Source of the DNA: Vitrella brassicaformis CCMP3155 | Taxonomy: Eukaryota; Protista; Chromerida | NCBI GenBank assembly: GCA_001179505.1 | Contig: CDMY01000759.1 | Span: 1-64,000 of the forward strand | DNA length: 64,000 bases | Direction: 5' to 3' | Shown: piece after piece, positions 56,641 to 63,232 of the stretch | Position numbering within the stretch: the first letter of the stretch is position 1 | Layout: each line of letters begins with the position of its first letter | Made by a program: the position numbers and the translations under genes | The notes under the pieces: generated by a model | What the model saw: only the letters and a program-made list of their open reading frames with translations | The model's database searches: none | What the model was told of the DNA's origin: nothing

Positions 56641-57551
56641 GTAAACACACACGTTTTGTCGCCAAGCCGCACAAAAAGCAGTGCAATGGATGGGTGGTGG
56701 TGGGTGGATAGCACACTCGGACTTTGATCAGCGGAGTTAGAGTCCTTTATCTCTGTTCGTTGTGCTGTACATGTGGTGCCGTGACACTCAACTCTCAAGG
56801 CACACATACAGGCATTCATGCTGTCGATGGCTATGATACGTCCTGTTGCTCTGAGTCTCATAAAAGCACTCGATTTAGCATTGAGTCCTGGGGCGCCTGC
56901 CTGCCTGCCTGTCTGCCTGTCTGTCGCCGCTTCATTCACTGCGCTTGCCGTGTCACACCCTCATCGCGCCTCGCAGGGCAACCAGCGTGCTAAGCAGAGA
57001 TCTGGCACACATTTCGATGCATTCATAAGATTCGCTGTACATTTCACGCGCTCGGTCGCATTGTTCGCAGGCAGGCTTCTGCAGAGCTACTGTATGCCAG
57101 TGAGTCATGCATCTGATCTACCTCAAGAACTGACGCCAGGACACGCTCCAAACACACACGAACTTAGTCATAGCATACCCCAAAAAATCTCTGTCACTTG
57201 CTTTCTCTCGCTATCCGCCCGTCGCCAAAAACTCAAGACGGCCAAAAAGACATTCATTGGACCTTCGCCAAGGCAACAGATGAATGGGGCATGCCTGTCC
57301 ATGCCTCTCCTCTCTCTCTCAGTCTGTCTCGGACGTTGAGAGACGTTGACTACATGAGCAGCGCTCTCTCACTCGGAAACGCCGCAAAATGCCTCTCTTG
57401 CTCACTCTCTGCCATGCAGTCAAGAAGCGATAACAGCACCCACCCCATCTCACATCAATCCACTGCTCATCCATCTGACTGTACACACATAACCGCAGCC
57501 ACCGGCCCAACTGCACTCCACTCCCATCCCCTCCCCTCTTCCTATTGAACA

Positions 57552-60500
57552 TCACGAAGAAGACACAGCAGCCCTCTTCCTCTCACGCTGCCCGGTCGTC
57601 TTGGCCCCATTGATCTTTACACGCCACCCGTTGACGGACATCGCTTCGCTCACGCCTCCACTCTCGTCGTCCTCCTTCATGGCTCCGGGCGCGCTGGGCG
57701 CCTCAGGCGGCGAAGGCAGGGTGAGAATGCGGCTGGGGAAGACGCCCTTCTTGGAGCACACCATCCGAAGACTCTGTTCCATCGTGGGGTGACACGCCAG
57801 CAGACACATGGTGGTCTGGGGACGCGGGATGCCGTCGGCCGCAAGGATGTTCTGCATGTACCCCTTGCGCACCTCCAGTGCGTCGAAGGAGTGGCTGACG
57901 GGGCCGCGCGACACGCACGGCACCACTTCTGTGCCCCGCTCCACCCACTGGGCGTAACGGCCGCGATAAGGCAGCGAGTCAATGCTGCGGGCGGCGCAGT
58001 AAATGACCACACGATGAGACCCACTCTGATGGATGAGGGAGCTCTCCAGCAAGGCGCGCAGGGGGCCGATGTTGGCCTCGGTTGCGAAGAGCAAGAGGGT
58101 CGTGACCGCGTATTTGCCGCTCGAAGTGAGGAAGTCGCCGATGGCAATGCCCTCGCCCTCAGGACGCGTCAGCTGACACACACAGACATGTACAGACCAG
58201 ACGAGAAGTAAGCGACGATAACGGACGACGATGCCATTCGTACGTACCTGAATCGGTGTGTCAGGGTCTGCCGTAGCGAGCCACTGCAGCTCTTTGCACT
58301 TGACTCGCCTCCCCGAATCCGACCTCGTGTACTCCTTGATGAGGAAGTCCAGCCGTCGTGATGCTCCCTCCCTCTCACCGCCACTCGACTTCACTGGAGC
58401 AAGCAGACCCGGCGGCGGGCTAGAAATCGGCAGCGTGACCACTGAGCCACCGCTTGCTGGCGCAAGGTGCGCATACATGCCCGGCGTGGTGTAGCTGTCG
58501 AGCATAGAGGGCGGCACCTCCACTGTCACGTGTCGGTACCCCTCTCCGGCGGGCACCGATACGACGACACGGCCAGTGTGCCAGTCAGCCGAAGATGGAC
58601 GCGGAGACTGTGCTGGGGGTGAAGAACTGGGGCCGGCCAGACGAGTGGACGGCTGGCTTTGCAAGGCATCATCAGAGGATCGCGAGAGGGCTGCCGGCGT
58701 CCAGCTGTTGTCATCCAGGTCCATGTCGTCCTCCTCGCTGCCCAGCATATCGGCCGCCTCGCCCACCCCTGTGTCGATGGTCTCATAGAGCTTGGAAAGC
58801 TGCTCCTCCCGCCACGTCTTGGCCAGCTCCCGGGCGTTCTGGATCCCATGCTGGCTCGCATAGAACCTCGCCGACTTGCGGGTGCTGCCGATGAACACCA
58901 CGGCCTCAAAAGCCTTGACCTCGGGCTCCCAGAACACACCGATCGGATCAGGATCCTCGCCGGACACATCCAGCGACAGCGTGTCGAGTGAGGGGACGGG
59001 TTGGGGGAAGGAGAGGGGCGCCTCACGGGTCATCTCCGATGGCAGAATGGGCTCGGAGGCATCGACCCGCTCGTCGAGTGACAGCCTCTGGCGCTTACCC
59101 GTCGCCTTGGCCTTGGCGGGGATGCGGATCTCTCGGGACCGCTTGGCCTTGGTGGACTTCTTGGCTTGGGGACGACCCAGCTTCACGCAGAGCAGGTCTC
59201 TGAGCTGCTGTCGCTTCTCCATTAGCAGCGGGCTGTTGCTGAAGTCAGTCGAAGCTGTTATGGGGTCGTCAGTCTCGAGTGGCCGTGGGTTGAGGTACGA
59301 GTCCATCTTGGTCAGCTGCTCTAGCCGCCTCTCCCGCACCTGCTCGGCCGCGTCGATCTGCCCCTCCAGCTGCACAATGCGGGTGACACAGTCCTCAAGC
59401 TCCCGCATCCTCGTCAAGCCGATCTTGAAGCGGCTCTCGATCTCTAACAGCGCTGCCTCGTCGACGCCTTCAAGCAGGGCGGTGTCGGTGGCATTGGCGA
59501 TGTCTGGTGGATCATCGGTGCCCAATAGGTGGGACAGGAAAACCCCAACTAGATCGGGAACCTTTAATCTGTAGGATGCAGTCACACCAGGACAGACAAT
59601 GGGGGTCTTCCTTCCTCTTTTCGAGAGTCTGGCTAAAGTGACCTGTTCCTCAGGTAGCCGCGTTCGTTCTTGGAGCGCCGGTCGTTAGTCACCGTGTCGA
59701 GGATCTGATCGTAGACGCCCATCAGCTCCTCCATCTGGCGGCTCGGCCGGGACTCTCGAAGACCCAGCGACACCGGCTGAGGTCCCACCAGCCCTCCCTC
59801 CTTTTCGACTGAAAAAAGGCATCAGCAAAGGACTCGTGTGTGAAGACGCATAAGAGGGGCCGGTGGTGGCTTTGCTCACCTGATGCGGCGTCAGTACTCG
59901 GCATGAGCACTTGTGGCCCCGATGCCAGCGCGAATTCGTCGGTCGACACGTATTTGACGTAAGGCGTCTTGCCGGTTGTCTCGACAATCTCGGCTACCCG
60001 CCTCTCCGTCTCCTGCTTGATCTCGTCGGCGGTGGGTTCACGACCGAGCTCCTGCGACGGACACATACAGTGGGTGAAGGGCTGATGGTATCCTGTGTGC
60101 CCCCGAGCTGTTGCCTACCGCTTTCAGGTCTCTGAAGATCTCGTTCCTCAGTCCGAGTGACCTCATGAGCAGGACGGTGATGGGCATGGCCCGCTCCTTG
60201 GCCATGCACACCTGGAGGGCCTGCTTCACCTTTGTTGTGATAACAGTCGCCAGCTTGAACCCACGGCGGTACTCGTACGCATCGACGGCCGATGACACGC
60301 CACGGATGGCAGCCTGAAGGGACACACGCACACGCAGAGAGAAGGCATCCATCGACACGGATGCAGGAAGGCGAGGGCATGCATCCTCACGTACCGCGAT
60401 CAGGTCGGAGACGTAGACCATTCTGGTGGTGAAGTAGGGCTCAGCGAGCCTGTAAGCCAGCCGCAGGTTGTGCCGTGTGAGCTGGCTCCTCGCGTAGCCT

Positions 60501-62712
60501 CCCTCCACCTCAAGGGCCAACAGATACCGACTCACACGCACACCGTGGGCATTCTACCGTGTCAACAAACCACAGAGACGAGAATGGGTCATGTGTGAGT
60601 GCATAGATTTGCCGGGAACAAGTGAAGCTCTCACCCTGAATCGGTAGAACCACGAGTCGAGCTCCTCGAGGTTGAAGACCCTCTCCTCGGTGCCCGCCGC
60701 ATCGATGCAGAGCTTCAGCAGCGGGGGGATGAGAGCGCGGGTGGCCAGCGACAGGTTGGTCAGGGCCTTCTTGACCTCCTGCTGAGAGATCGACGTCTCA
60801 CCCTGCGACTGAGACCGCTCCTCGATGTAAGACAGCAGCTCGTCGTTAAAGGGCTTGTCCAAGACGTCACGCACGCGCCTGCAGCGCAATGCACCCATCC
60901 CGCGCATGAGGTCCGTCCAGCTTTCCGTGAGTGCGTGCTTACTGGTCCATGATGTTGTGTTTGAAGCCGGCCTCTTTGTCCATGCCGAAGTAGTCAAGCA
61001 TGGCATTGTAGTAGGGCATTAGCGACACCAGCTCCCTAATGAGCTCAGGGAGGATGTCGACGGGCTGTACTTCCAGCAGCTCCTTCCACAACGACGCCCT
61101 GAACCGACCGCCCGTCGCCTTGCGCTGCTTCTCCCACTTGGTCTCGCGGGCACGGACCTCCAATCCACGCACAAACCTGCAAACGGAAGACGGCGCGACA
61201 CGTGCATCAGTGGAAGGTTGATGTGCTTCTTGACAAAAAACTCACCTGCCGATTTCCATCCGCAAAGCGAGCTTCTGCACTTCTTTCGGAGGCAGCGGCG
61301 GGAAGGCCCCCAAGACGGCACCGAACTGGGACAGGGACACCCTCTCAGCCTCGCTCTGGAAGTTGGCCCCCGGGGGGAACTGCCACTCCCTTCCAACCTC
61401 CTCCCTGACCGTCTCCCGCCGCCGCCTCTCCTCTGCCTTGGTCAGGCCTGACGCCTGCAGTACCAACACGCCGCCATTCTCCACAGAGAGACTCACTCCA
61501 GCAGATGACTCGAGGTCCGACGCCAGCTCGGCCACTCGTGCGGTGGGATAGGACGTGTCAGACGCCTGCGACTTGTCGCCGGACAGGGAGACGAACTTGT
61601 CGTAGGAAGAGCCGCTTGGTGACCCTTTCCCCTTGGGGCGAAAGACGGAAACAAACTGGTCTTCCTCGGGGCGGAAGACGGCGCTCATCTCGACCTGGAT
61701 GGGGCTCTCATCGTCTTCCCCACCGTCAGCCCAACGCGGCACCGTGGGGGTCGGCTCAAGCAGCCTGGCCGCCAGGTCCTGTGCCGACTCGCGCCGATAG
61801 GCCGGGAAGACCTCGAAAACCTCGTCATACCGCCCTCGAGGCTGAGGCGCACTGGCAACAGGGGATGTCACATTGCCGCCCATCAGCTGAGTGGAGAGCG
61901 CTGCGGTCTGTGTGCCGGCAGTGAGGGACGCAAGCTGCAGCTCGGGCAGGAAGGCGCTGGAGGGAAGAATGGGCGCTGCGGGGGAGGGGTCGGGCATGAT
62001 GCCAGCCGCGGACGCCGCGGATGGGCGATCACGGAACTGAGGGATCTCCTCTGTGGGAAAGGGGAAAGGCAACCAAGCAAGCCGGTGTGCGTGAAGGACA
62101 TGGGGTACGGCTCTTGACGTACCAGTGCTGATGTTGTATTTCTGCATGAGTGAAAGCGCCTCATCCTCGGTGATCTTCCCAGTCCGAATCTTCCTGCGCA
62201 CGCACAAATACGCAGCACAAAAGGCCGTGCCATGTCGGACACTCACTGGCTATCACCTCACCCCTCCCTCACCTTTCGAAATGAATGAGGACCATCTTTC
62301 GCTGCTCGGCGGTCAAAAAATCCTCCCGGGCAAATCTGGCCTGACCGCTGGCTGACCTCCTCATACCCCCCCTCCTCTCCTGGTCCTCGTCTGTGTCTTG
62401 CTTCTCCTCAGAGAAGAAATTATCCCACACCCAGCCGAGAAAACCGTCAAACTTGCGGCTCCTGGCGGACTGGAAGGTCACAGGGGCCCGCTTGCGACTC
62501 GTGTCAGTCTTGGACAGGCCGCGGCGTGGGTCCGGGGGGATGAGGGAGGGCAGGAAGGCTGTCTCCATTCGCTGATGTGGCCGCACACAGACAGATGAGG
62601 CGAACAGAAGGACGAGCAAGAGACCAAAGAGGACGCGGCGCGCTGCTGACGACTGCCGAGAGTGTCTGTTCGACCGCTGATAGTGGCCGAAGCGCCGCAG
62701 GCTGATGCCCAT
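57552..62712 (-). CDS. Plastid-targeted sigma-70-like factor fused to an AP2 DNA-binding domain and an FNR-like (pKIWI502-type) oxidoreductase domain (~1,500 aa, ~11 exons)
   Basis: Leader ...VLFGLLLVLLFASS...TAFLP plus a basic S/T-rich transit peptide; sigma region 1.2 PPLPPKEVQKLALRMEIG; region 2 ARSQLTRHNLRL...DLI...AVDAYEYRRGFKLAT; region 3 ELGREPTADEI; region-4-like GVDEAALLEIESR; AP2 IGVFWEPEVKAFEA...ARFYASQHGIQNARELAKTWR; FNR-like YTTPGMY...ISSPP...DFLIK, LLLFATEANIGPLR, GYMQ. Every GT-AG junction I checked keeps the frame. Confidence 0.8.
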
Positions 62713-62854
62713 ATCAGATCAGCACAGCTGCTGCCATGCAGGGACTGGCAGTCGAGGAGCCAGATGAGGGTCAACGCGAGGGGCGCAGCACCATCCTGGA
62801 CAGCCTCTTCCTCTTCATCAGCTCCTTGGTGTCTGACCTCTCCAGCAGCTGATC

Positions 62855-62992
62855 TTTAGGGCTGATGCGCAGCACTTGAAGGCAGCTGCGTTCTCATACT
62901 ACAGCACACAAAGGCACTGGCACTTCTACGCTGCGGGGACGCGAGCTCGAATCCGTCGAGAAAGGCACAAACCCTAACCCCGCAAACCCTAA
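62855..62992. promoter_or_regulatory. Cluster of three telo-box/telomere-type heptamers upstream of the sigma-AP2-FNR gene
   Basis: TTTAGGG at 62855-62861 and AAACCCTAA at 62969-62977 and 62984-62992. Confidence 0.35.
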
Positions 62993-63232
62993 CAAAAAAA
63001 GACTGCGAATAAAACATTCAAGAATTCCATTCTCCTGTGCTTCCGCCGCCCTCCCTTCCCATCCCGGGCCGCTCTTCTTCCCAAGGCTCTCGCACCACCA
63101 CACTTTCTGAAATCGTCAGCCCTGCTCGACGTCTGGTGGATGGGTGGGCTGTCCGTCAGCACATCGCCCGCTATCGCCGCCGAGGACGACACACACATGG
63201 GTGGCACGGGTGGCTCGAACGCGCCAAAATGC

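Follow-up and report, generated by a model that had tools for sequence, protein, structure and literature searches.

What can a sigma-70 module do in a eukaryotic nuclear gene once the residues with which bacterial sigmas open and read promoters have been replaced? This question is raised by a locus of the chromerid Vitrella brassicaformis CCMP3155, on the minus strand at 57552 to 62712 of a 64,000-nucleotide stretch of DNA referred to as the window (contig CDMY01000759.1, positions 1 to 64,000). The gene at this locus is an intron-rich nuclear gene that is expressed, as public transcript runs over 57500-62800 demonstrate. Its product is present in public databases as CEM32640.1, where its relation to sigma factors has gone unrecognised. 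Based on alignments and profile comparisons, we consider the module to be a true sigma-70 relative, certain for region 2, probable for region 3.0, and putative for region 4. We tentatively favour the view that the protein is a lineage-specific, specialised plastid sigma-like factor, which would be unable to read or melt standard -10/-35 promoters alone and would be anchored via its other parts.

Gene model and domain order

The gene was reconstructed from spliced transcript contigs and the open reading frame (ORF) defined by their joints.

57552 to 62712, minus strand: whole gene, 11 exons and 10 introns, 1475-codon ORF (spliced transcript contigs of runs X6, X11, and X13, plus the ORF from their joints)

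All 10 introns are 67 to 81 nt long and read GT..AG on the gene strand (CT..AC on the plus strand). A single contig of run X6 contains all ten joints, and runs X11 and X13, from a different study, share several of them; spliced transcripts, full-length or partial, are thus present in runs from two studies. The ORF starts with the ATG at 62712, ends with a stop codon whose last base is 57552, and stays intact for 1475 codons over the 10 introns. From residue 49 onward, the spliced protein is identical to CEM32640.1 (UniRef A0A0G4GQB6, V. brassicaformis CCMP3155), whose database names are "unnamed protein product" and "FAD-binding FR-type domain-containing protein." Mis-splicing or a frame artefact is ruled out by the presence of all ten joints in transcript contigs and by the match of the spliced protein to CEM32640.1. 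Over the stretch these contigs carry no differing letters, which argues against a sequence error or RNA editing at the key codons.

The protein consists, in order, of a signal-peptide-like leader, about 550 residues without a family match, the sigma-70 module, an AP2-type domain, and a ferredoxin-reductase-like domain. In that unmatched part (61246-62712), which separates the leader from region 2, no family score reached or approached its cutoff. Visual inspection alone suggested a region-1.2-like segment, PPKEVQKLALRMEIGR, at about 61158-61349 on the minus strand.

Sigma-70 homology of region 2 and a probable region 3

Four exons carry the part of the module that can be compared with bacterial sigmas at regions 2 to 3:

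60395 to 60553, minus strand: exon with region 2.1 and the start of 2.2 (model residues 599-651), NLRL kept and DLIA at the exon end (sequence comparison)
60119 to 60313, minus strand: exon with the remainder of 2.2, regions 2.3 and 2.4, and the start of 3.0 (model residues 652-716; sequence comparison)
59880 to 60051, minus strand: exon with region 3.0/3.1 (ELGREPTADEIKQ...), about 20 extra residues relative to bacterial sigmas (alignment; sub-cutoff Pfam Sigma70_r3 match)
59643 to 59808, minus strand: exon with a region 3.2-like linker (weak, by MAFFT only, which pairs SLGLRES with bacterial HLGDFIE)

The region 2 strings NLRL, DLIA joined to AAIRG over the intron at 60314-60394, and AVDAYEYRRGFKLATVITTKVKQAL are encoded at 60197-60535 on the minus strand. 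They had been read correctly in an earlier inspection of the letters of this DNA (the sequence-only reading), including the join across the intron, with which both the transcript contigs and CEM32640.1 agree. The module aligns nearly without gaps to residues 361-485 of Escherichia coli sigma-70, at 34% identity over 124 aligned positions. With phmmer, the match to E. coli RpoD reaches 53.7 bits (pairwise E value of 5e-19, E. coli residues 364-486, one gap of 1 residue), and an unspliced exon alone matches the Thermus SigA and E. coli RpoD chains of the PDB at an E value of 3e-5. A hidden Markov model (HMM) built from 64 bacterial metagenome sigmas gives the spliced protein 60 bits, with a match that ends in region 3. 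Among the NCBIfam models, those for SigB, RpoD, and RpoS give E values of 3e-16 to 1e-11 (42 to 59 bits), and the FliA/WhiG model gives 1e-8 (35 bits). Every curated sigma model nevertheless scores far below its cutoff; Pfam Sigma70_r2 reaches 15 bits against a cutoff of 24, and Sigma70_r3, which aligns ELGREPT to region 3.0, reaches 16 to 17 bits against 25.3.

With the AlphaFold model as query, Foldseek returned 85 matches at an E value of 0.001 or less, and all of the 50 listed are primary-type sigma chains of polymerase structures, from a query model that is poor and biased by its alignment. The module is a probable descendant of a primary-type (group 1/2) sigma, with the fold-determining residues and the loop AVDxYEYRRGFK kept. 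Because the FliA model scores 35 bits against 42 to 59 for the RpoD, SigB, and RpoS models, we place CEM32640.1 outside group 3 on profile evidence. No second sigma motif was found in the window.

Loss of melting, promoter-reading, and core-contacting residues in region 2

Three short features of region 2 determine how the module can be interpreted:

60230 to 60244, minus strand: codons V675 I676 T677 T678 K679, equivalent to E. coli Y430 A431 T432 W433 W434 (mapping to E. coli numbering)
60254 to 60289, minus strand: best-preserved block, AVDAYEYRRGFK, E. coli 415-426 (conservation count and mapping)
60305 to 60313, minus strand: codons A652 A653 I654, equivalent to E. coli E407 G408 N409 (mapping; roles from PMC8321222)

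In bacterial sigma-70, Y425, Y430, W433, and W434 act in strand opening, and Q437 has a role at -12 (PMC4496690). The melting aromatics are replaced in the Vitrella protein (Y430V, W433T, and W434K), as the sequence-only reading had stated in writing that YATWW has become VITTK, and the mapping to E. coli numbering agrees with it. Y425 is changed conservatively to phenylalanine (Y425F), and Q437 is kept. Further changes are K414S, K418A, R436K, T440Q, and R441V, together with H455L and E458R in region 3.0. We take K414 and K418 to be the non-template-strand lysines, T440 and R441 to lie on the DNA-facing side of helix 2.3/2.4, and H455 and E458 to be the extended -10 readers. Aromatic residues at positions 430, 433, and 434 were sought by alignment; none was found there, and the next 30 positions hold no aromatic either. 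An alignment shift that restores the aromatics is impossible, with model residues 671-700 (the thirty after F670) free of F, Y, W, and H.

The bacterial comparison set consists of 77 sigma loci from metagenomes that were chosen via the shared motif YEYRRGFK; they are primary-type sigmas and represent the nearest sequence relatives, not every sigma class. Y430, W433, W434, K418, R436, and R441 are invariant in this set (77/77), as are the region 2.2 residues D403, Q406, E407, N409, L402, and M413 (77/77). Of the positions between E. coli residues 375 and 486, 73 show at least 95% conservation in the bacteria; the Vitrella protein retains 31 of these, patchily. The block at 415-426 keeps 11 of 12 bacteria-invariant positions, in line with the earlier remark that the flanks of the altered motif stay RpoD-like; we presume that this loop forms the sigma-70 pocket for the flipped -11 adenine. 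Helix 427-441 retains 4 of 15, and its non-conservative changes lie on the DNA-facing side. Because the loop is so well kept while the helix is altered where it faces DNA, the substitution pattern suggests that a surface has been remodelled, not that the module has decayed evenly.

The contacts to the polymerase core are affected as well. D403, Q406, E407, and N409 of region 2.2 contact the beta-prime coiled-coil (PMC8321222), and among these four residues D403 alone is kept (Q406A, E407A, and N409I; the A651 codon at the Q406 position lies on the other side of the intron, at 60395-60397). The sequence-only reading held that the module keeps its core-binding motifs, which is correct for NLRL and D403-L-I and incorrect for Q406A, E407A, N409I, L402S, and M413S, the last two also in region 2.2. 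As aligned, the module appears to lack both the W433/W434 wedge and the stacking residue Y430, together with most of the residues that read bases in regions 2.4, 3.0, and 4.2. Because its melting and base-reading residues are lost, it would be unable to work like RpoD on -10/-35 promoters.

A putative region 4 in a corrected register

Downstream of the region 3.2-like linker, three features were assigned to a putative region 4:

59364 to 59567, minus strand: putative region 4, with a 4.1-like helix, an insertion of about 16 to 29 residues, and the helix-turn-helix EAALLEIESRF-KIG-LTRMRELEDCVTRIVQLE (MAFFT, hhalign, and region-4 HMM)
59373 to 59420, minus strand: recognition-helix equivalent, GLTRMRELEDCVTRIV, E. 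coli T583-L598 (three-method register)
59430 to 59468, minus strand: GVDEAALLEIESR, first helix of the helix-turn-helix, about E. coli 567-579 (alignments)

MAFFT (run on four bacterial sigmas plus E. coli), hhalign, and the region-4 HMM alike pair E. coli EEVGKQFDVTRERIRQIE with LEIESRFKIGLTRMRELE, each of them weakly. In this three-method register, TRERIRQIE corresponds to GLTRMRELE. The string GVDEAALLEIESR, which had earlier been put forward as the counterpart of TRERIRQIE, is present, but all three methods align it with the helix before the recognition helix. We assume that R584, E585, R586, R588, and Q589 are the residues that read the -35 element. Three of these five are changed (R584L, E585T, and Q589E) and R586 and R588 are kept, so -35-reading residues do appear to be lost, as the sequence-only reading had it. 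The description of the recognition helix as acidic and aliphatic has to be given up in the corrected register, where both R586 and R588 remain.

The scores behind this assignment are low. Against the region-4 profile, hhalign gives an E value of 0.086, and the region-4 HMM gives 3.3 bits, a score reached by 22 of 1,000 shuffles (p of about 0.02). For residues 765-860, every language-model neighbour is a Sigma70_r4 cluster (score of 0.83), which we treat as a lead only. An AlphaFold2 model from a 7-row alignment, with a predicted local distance difference test (pLDDT) score of 48, places helices at the two helix-turn-helix segments, and single-sequence AlphaFold yields long helices only (pLDDT of 65); the fold is settled by neither model.

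Fused AP2-type and reductase-like domains

Behind region 4, the protein continues with the following parts, listed here from the sigma module toward the C terminus:

59082 to 59174, minus strand: strongly basic, K/R-rich stretch of 31 residues (residues 961-991) before the AP2 domain, resembling a nuclear localisation signal (NLS) or a nucleic-acid-binding segment (sequence)
58803 to 58949, minus strand: AP2-type domain, model residues 1036-1084 (sub-cutoff Pfam AP2 match)
57720 to 58592, minus strand: C-terminal ferredoxin-reductase-like domain, model residues about 1155-1420, split by the intron at 58173-58247 (UniRef name and sub-cutoff Pfam match)

The AP2-type domain follows region 4 at a distance of about 140 residues. 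Its Pfam AP2 match has an E value of 1e-5 and 26.2 bits (cutoff of 33.3), and its language-model (Atlas) neighbours are AP2 clusters, with a score of 0.88. Its best PDB match is not a DNA-bound AP2 but the Toxoplasma gondii mitoribosomal RNA-binding protein AP2VIIb-2 (9g6k and 9i05; E value of 0.03). For the reductase-like domain, Pfam NAD_binding_1 reaches 14.6 bits against a cutoff of 22, the language-model neighbours are NAD_binding_1/FAD_binding_6 clusters (score of 0.84), and neither a FAD_binding_6 match in Pfam nor a sequence match in the PDB was found. Judged from its residues, this domain is possibly degenerate, a pseudo-enzyme. By eye, the position of the glycine-rich nucleotide-binding motif reads ATEANIGP, which is non-canonical, and no typical arginine/tyrosine FAD motif can be made out.

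N-terminal leader and the 5' end of the gene

The public CEM32640.1 model begins at M49, and an earlier in-frame ATG, which lies inside the transcript, adds 48 residues.

62584 to 62712, minus strand: N-terminal leader, unannotated, signal-peptide-like (first in-frame ATG after a stop; covered by a transcript contig)

The leader has a basic n-region followed by a 17-residue hydrophobic stretch (residues 27-43; window means of up to 2.1 on the Kyte-Doolittle scale); residues 44-95, after the hydrophobic segment, are basic and rich in Ser/Thr. In this composition it looks like the start of a bipartite plastid leader, and the targeting leader is probably missing from the deposited CEM32640.1 model.

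The main ATG is preceded, at 62737-62897 on the minus strand, by four upstream ATGs that open short out-of-frame ORFs of 7 to 15 codons; at least three fall within the transcribed leader, where they might affect start-codon choice. Farther upstream, at 62968-62993 on the minus strand, GTTAGGGTTTG occurs in two exact copies 15 nt apart, about 40 to 60 nt beyond the point where the transcript contig is estimated to end. It is similar to the plant-type telomere repeat or "telo-box"; its chance expectation in the window is 0.42, and two or more copies occurred in 7 of 100 shuffles. Marine sediment metagenome runs contain up to about half of the sampled 31-mers of 57500-62800, and near-identical Vitrella DNA is apparently present in marine sediment samples.

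Absence of detectable relatives

No relative of the protein was detectable in collections of about 1.8 and about 5.8 billion proteins or in metagenome contigs. When 1.84 billion representatives were searched exhaustively by phmmer with region 2, the only hits were the protein itself, three bacterial fragments that are chimeric, and a pair of long proteins whose alignment falls mostly on the intron-translated part of the query. Word searches with residues 372-840 and 555-700 of CEM32640.1 returned the protein itself and three bacterial RpoDs, a word search with the C-terminal ORF returned no relative, and two metagenome scans returned bacterial sigmas alone, at 35 to 47% identity. The word searches use length windows and may miss shorter or longer kin, whereas the exhaustive phmmer search has no length limit.

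When E. coli sigma-70 is the BLAST query, the Vitrella protein retrieved is another one, CEL93836 (PMC10334805), and therefore CEM32640.1 need not be the housekeeping plastid sigma. It is CEL93836, not CEM32640.1, that represents Vitrella in the sigma tree of the same study. A canonical sigma paralogue is likely to exist in this organism.

Comparison with known sigma and AP2 proteins

The closest parallels in setting are the plastid sigmas, SIG1-6 of plants and ApSigma of Plasmodium (PF3D7_0621000), which share with CEM32640.1 a nuclear gene, an N-terminal extension, a sigma-70 module of primary descent, and an organism with a bacterial-type plastid polymerase. ApSigma differs in that its regions 2 and 4 are reported to be highly conserved, and its 2.3-2.4 segment partly replaces that of sigma-S (PMC10334805). 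In CEM32640.1, by contrast, substitutions affect the melting aromatics, the -10/-35 readers, and the beta-prime contacts; region 4 can hardly be detected, and the module is fused to AP2 and reductase-like domains.

Individual losses have precedents. Sigma-28 (FliA) of group 3 is functional without the tryptophan pair, with I79/R80 in its place, and the basic residue, which is conserved in group 3, contacts -12 (PMC12784957). The Vitrella protein has threonine and lysine at these positions and thus shares with sigma-28 a basic residue at the W434 position (R80 and K, respectively). Because sigma-28 works with I79/R80, loss of the tryptophan pair alone is not fatal to a sigma. Sigma-28 differs in that it retains the stacking tyrosine Y76 (equivalent to Y430); its region 4 is clear, and its core binding is normal. 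Substituted beta-prime contacts are found in sigma-70 of Hodgkinia and other reduced endosymbionts, where positions 403, 406, 407, and 409 are affected (including E407A) and region 2.3 varies; in the Hodgkinia homologue all four contact residues are lost (PMC8321222). These endosymbiont sigmas are small and encoded in the endosymbiont genome, whereas CEM32640.1 is nuclear and has eukaryotic-type fused domains.

Fused domains also have partial counterparts. Sigmas whose fused C-terminal domains tune promoter recognition are known, and in ECF41 and Mycobacterium tuberculosis sigma-J an extra domain behind region 4 can modulate promoter recognition or activity in cis (PMC3426412, PMC5766207). Those are minimal group 4 sigmas with SnoaL-like domains, unlike the primary-type sigma relic with AP2 and reductase-like domains described here, a combination of which we found no description in the literature; nor did we find a paper combining a sigma factor, the apicoplast, and an AP2 domain. 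The mitochondrial AP2 proteins (mtAP2s) of T. gondii, such as AP2VIIb-2, resemble CEM32640.1 in that an AP2 domain is part of an apparently organelle-sent protein (PMC11652630). They differ from it as small mitoribosomal RNA binders that are conserved across Myzozoa, while CEM32640.1 is large, lacks orthologues, and contains a sigma module.

Possible roles of the protein

Under the plastid sigma-like role that we tentatively favour, the functional surfaces of the sigma scaffold would have been rewritten, namely helix 2.3/2.4, the non-template lysines, the extended -10 readers, the -35 readers, and the beta-prime contacts. The plastid polymerase would be joined, if at all, by way of an interface that is weakened or has co-evolved. 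Most of the DNA anchoring and specificity would then have another source, for which the AP2 domain tethered behind region 4 would be the obvious candidate. The signal-peptide-like hydrophobic stretch in the leader speaks for this role, and the precedents of sigma-28, Hodgkinia, and the sigmas with fused C-terminal domains are consistent with it.

Several observations weigh against it. Plastid location, polymerase binding, DNA binding, and any role of the AP2 domain are points that we infer, and the public start at M49 together with the basic NLS-like stretch before AP2 makes a nuclear location possible. The near-universal Q-E pair of region 2.2 is lost, and in E. coli its loss weakens binding to the beta-prime coiled-coil. 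Y430 is lost too, though even sigma-28 keeps its counterpart Y76. Region 4 is statistically unsupported, with no HMM hit, no match in Pfam or by phmmer in the PDB, and a shuffle p of about 0.02; both AlphaFold runs are poor (pLDDT of 48 and 65); and the AP2 and reductase-like domains are both under their Pfam cutoffs. Finally, there is no orthologue with which to show purifying selection.

A bolder form of the plastid sigma-like role seems improbable to us. It would have the sigma scaffold give up its -10/-35 surfaces, the fused AP2 domain pick the promoters, and the reductase-like module supply a possible redox input, which together would define a new class of hybrid initiation factor. The sequence-only reading had offered such a transfer of promoter choice to AP2 as one of two options, and it is geometrically plausible given that the AP2 domain lies about 140 residues behind region 4. 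Organellar AP2 proteins of Myzozoa are known as RNA binders rather than transcription factors (PMC11652630).

Nearly as likely as the favoured plastid sigma-like factor, if somewhat unlikely in its own right, is a pseudo-sigma that does not initiate transcription. The fold would then be kept as a structural or nucleic-acid- or protein-binding module of a multidomain organellar protein, for example a nucleoid- or RNA-associated one, without core binding or initiation, and the AP2 domain would bind RNA or DNA like the mitochondrial AP2s of Myzozoa. The extent of the losses fits this explanation, as three of four beta-prime contacts are gone, Y430, W433, and W434 are all replaced, most residues that read the -10, extended -10, and -35 elements are lost, region 4 is barely recognisable, and the curated sigma models all score far below cutoff. 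The closest solved AP2 is a mitoribosomal RNA binder, and mtAP2s are not transcription factors (PMC11652630). With the reductase-like domain apparently degenerate too, the protein may be a chain of ex-functional folds, comparable to the enzyme-like proteins associated with the plastid-encoded polymerase (PEP) of plants (PMC11561172). The selective retention of the 415-426 loop and of Q437, however, would be unexpected if domain 2 had abandoned nucleic-acid handling, and eroded sigmas with the same losses persist as the sigma-70 homologue of reduced endosymbionts (PMC8321222).

It is unlikely that the protein is a nuclear regulator of the ApiAP2 type, translated from M49 or carrying a leader that does not target, with the sigma-like and reductase-like parts as accessories. 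The public annotation does begin at M49, a strongly basic NLS-like stretch directly precedes the AP2 domain, and the four short ORFs ahead of the main ATG might alter which start is used. We know of no sigma-70-derived module with a known nuclear role, which counts against this explanation, as does the first in-frame ATG, which the transcript includes and from which a typical n-region and a 17-residue hydrophobic stretch are read. While ApiAP2 genes are abundant in chromerids (PMC4501334), the sigma homologues so far described from the nuclear genomes of plants and Plasmodium act in the plastid (PMC10334805).

The other option of the sequence-only reading, a decoy or repressor that binds the polymerase core, cannot open promoters, and titrates core away from productive sigmas, has become very unlikely. 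Melting and promoter-reading residues are gone while the sigma domain 2 fold is kept, as a decoy would have it. The choice between decoy and AP2-directed sigma had presupposed intact core binding, a premise that fails, and the decoy branch is weakened because three of the four beta-prime coiled-coil contacts in region 2.2, which it needs most, are replaced (Q406A, E407A, and N409I). The region 4/flap interface is unrecognisable, and we know of no precedent for a sigma homologue that acts as a core-sequestering decoy, which also counts against it.

Least probable of all is a young chimeric gene without selected function whose domains are drifting, for although no orthologue was found and all three recognisable domains are below threshold, its 1475-codon ORF is uninterrupted over 10 correctly spliced introns, its spliced transcripts come from two studies, and conservation in sigma domain 2 is patterned rather than uniform.

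Implications for plastid transcription and annotation

Little is known about the choice of transcription start sites in chromerid and apicomplexan plastids, and ApSigma is, to our knowledge, the sole sigma that has been studied in them. In apicoplast genomes, no clear bacterial-type promoters have been found (PMC5404108). The annotation of this gene also matters, as the public record names the FAD-binding FR-type domain alone and leaves out the probable targeting leader. A rewired sigma that has acquired an AP2 domain would be a natural experiment on what the sigma scaffold can do without its canonical surfaces. If CEM32640.1 no longer works with the plastid polymerase, the sigma fold would have been reused in a eukaryote, a case of which we found no published description. 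If it does work with the plastid polymerase, this would imply a non-canonical promoter code in the lineage.

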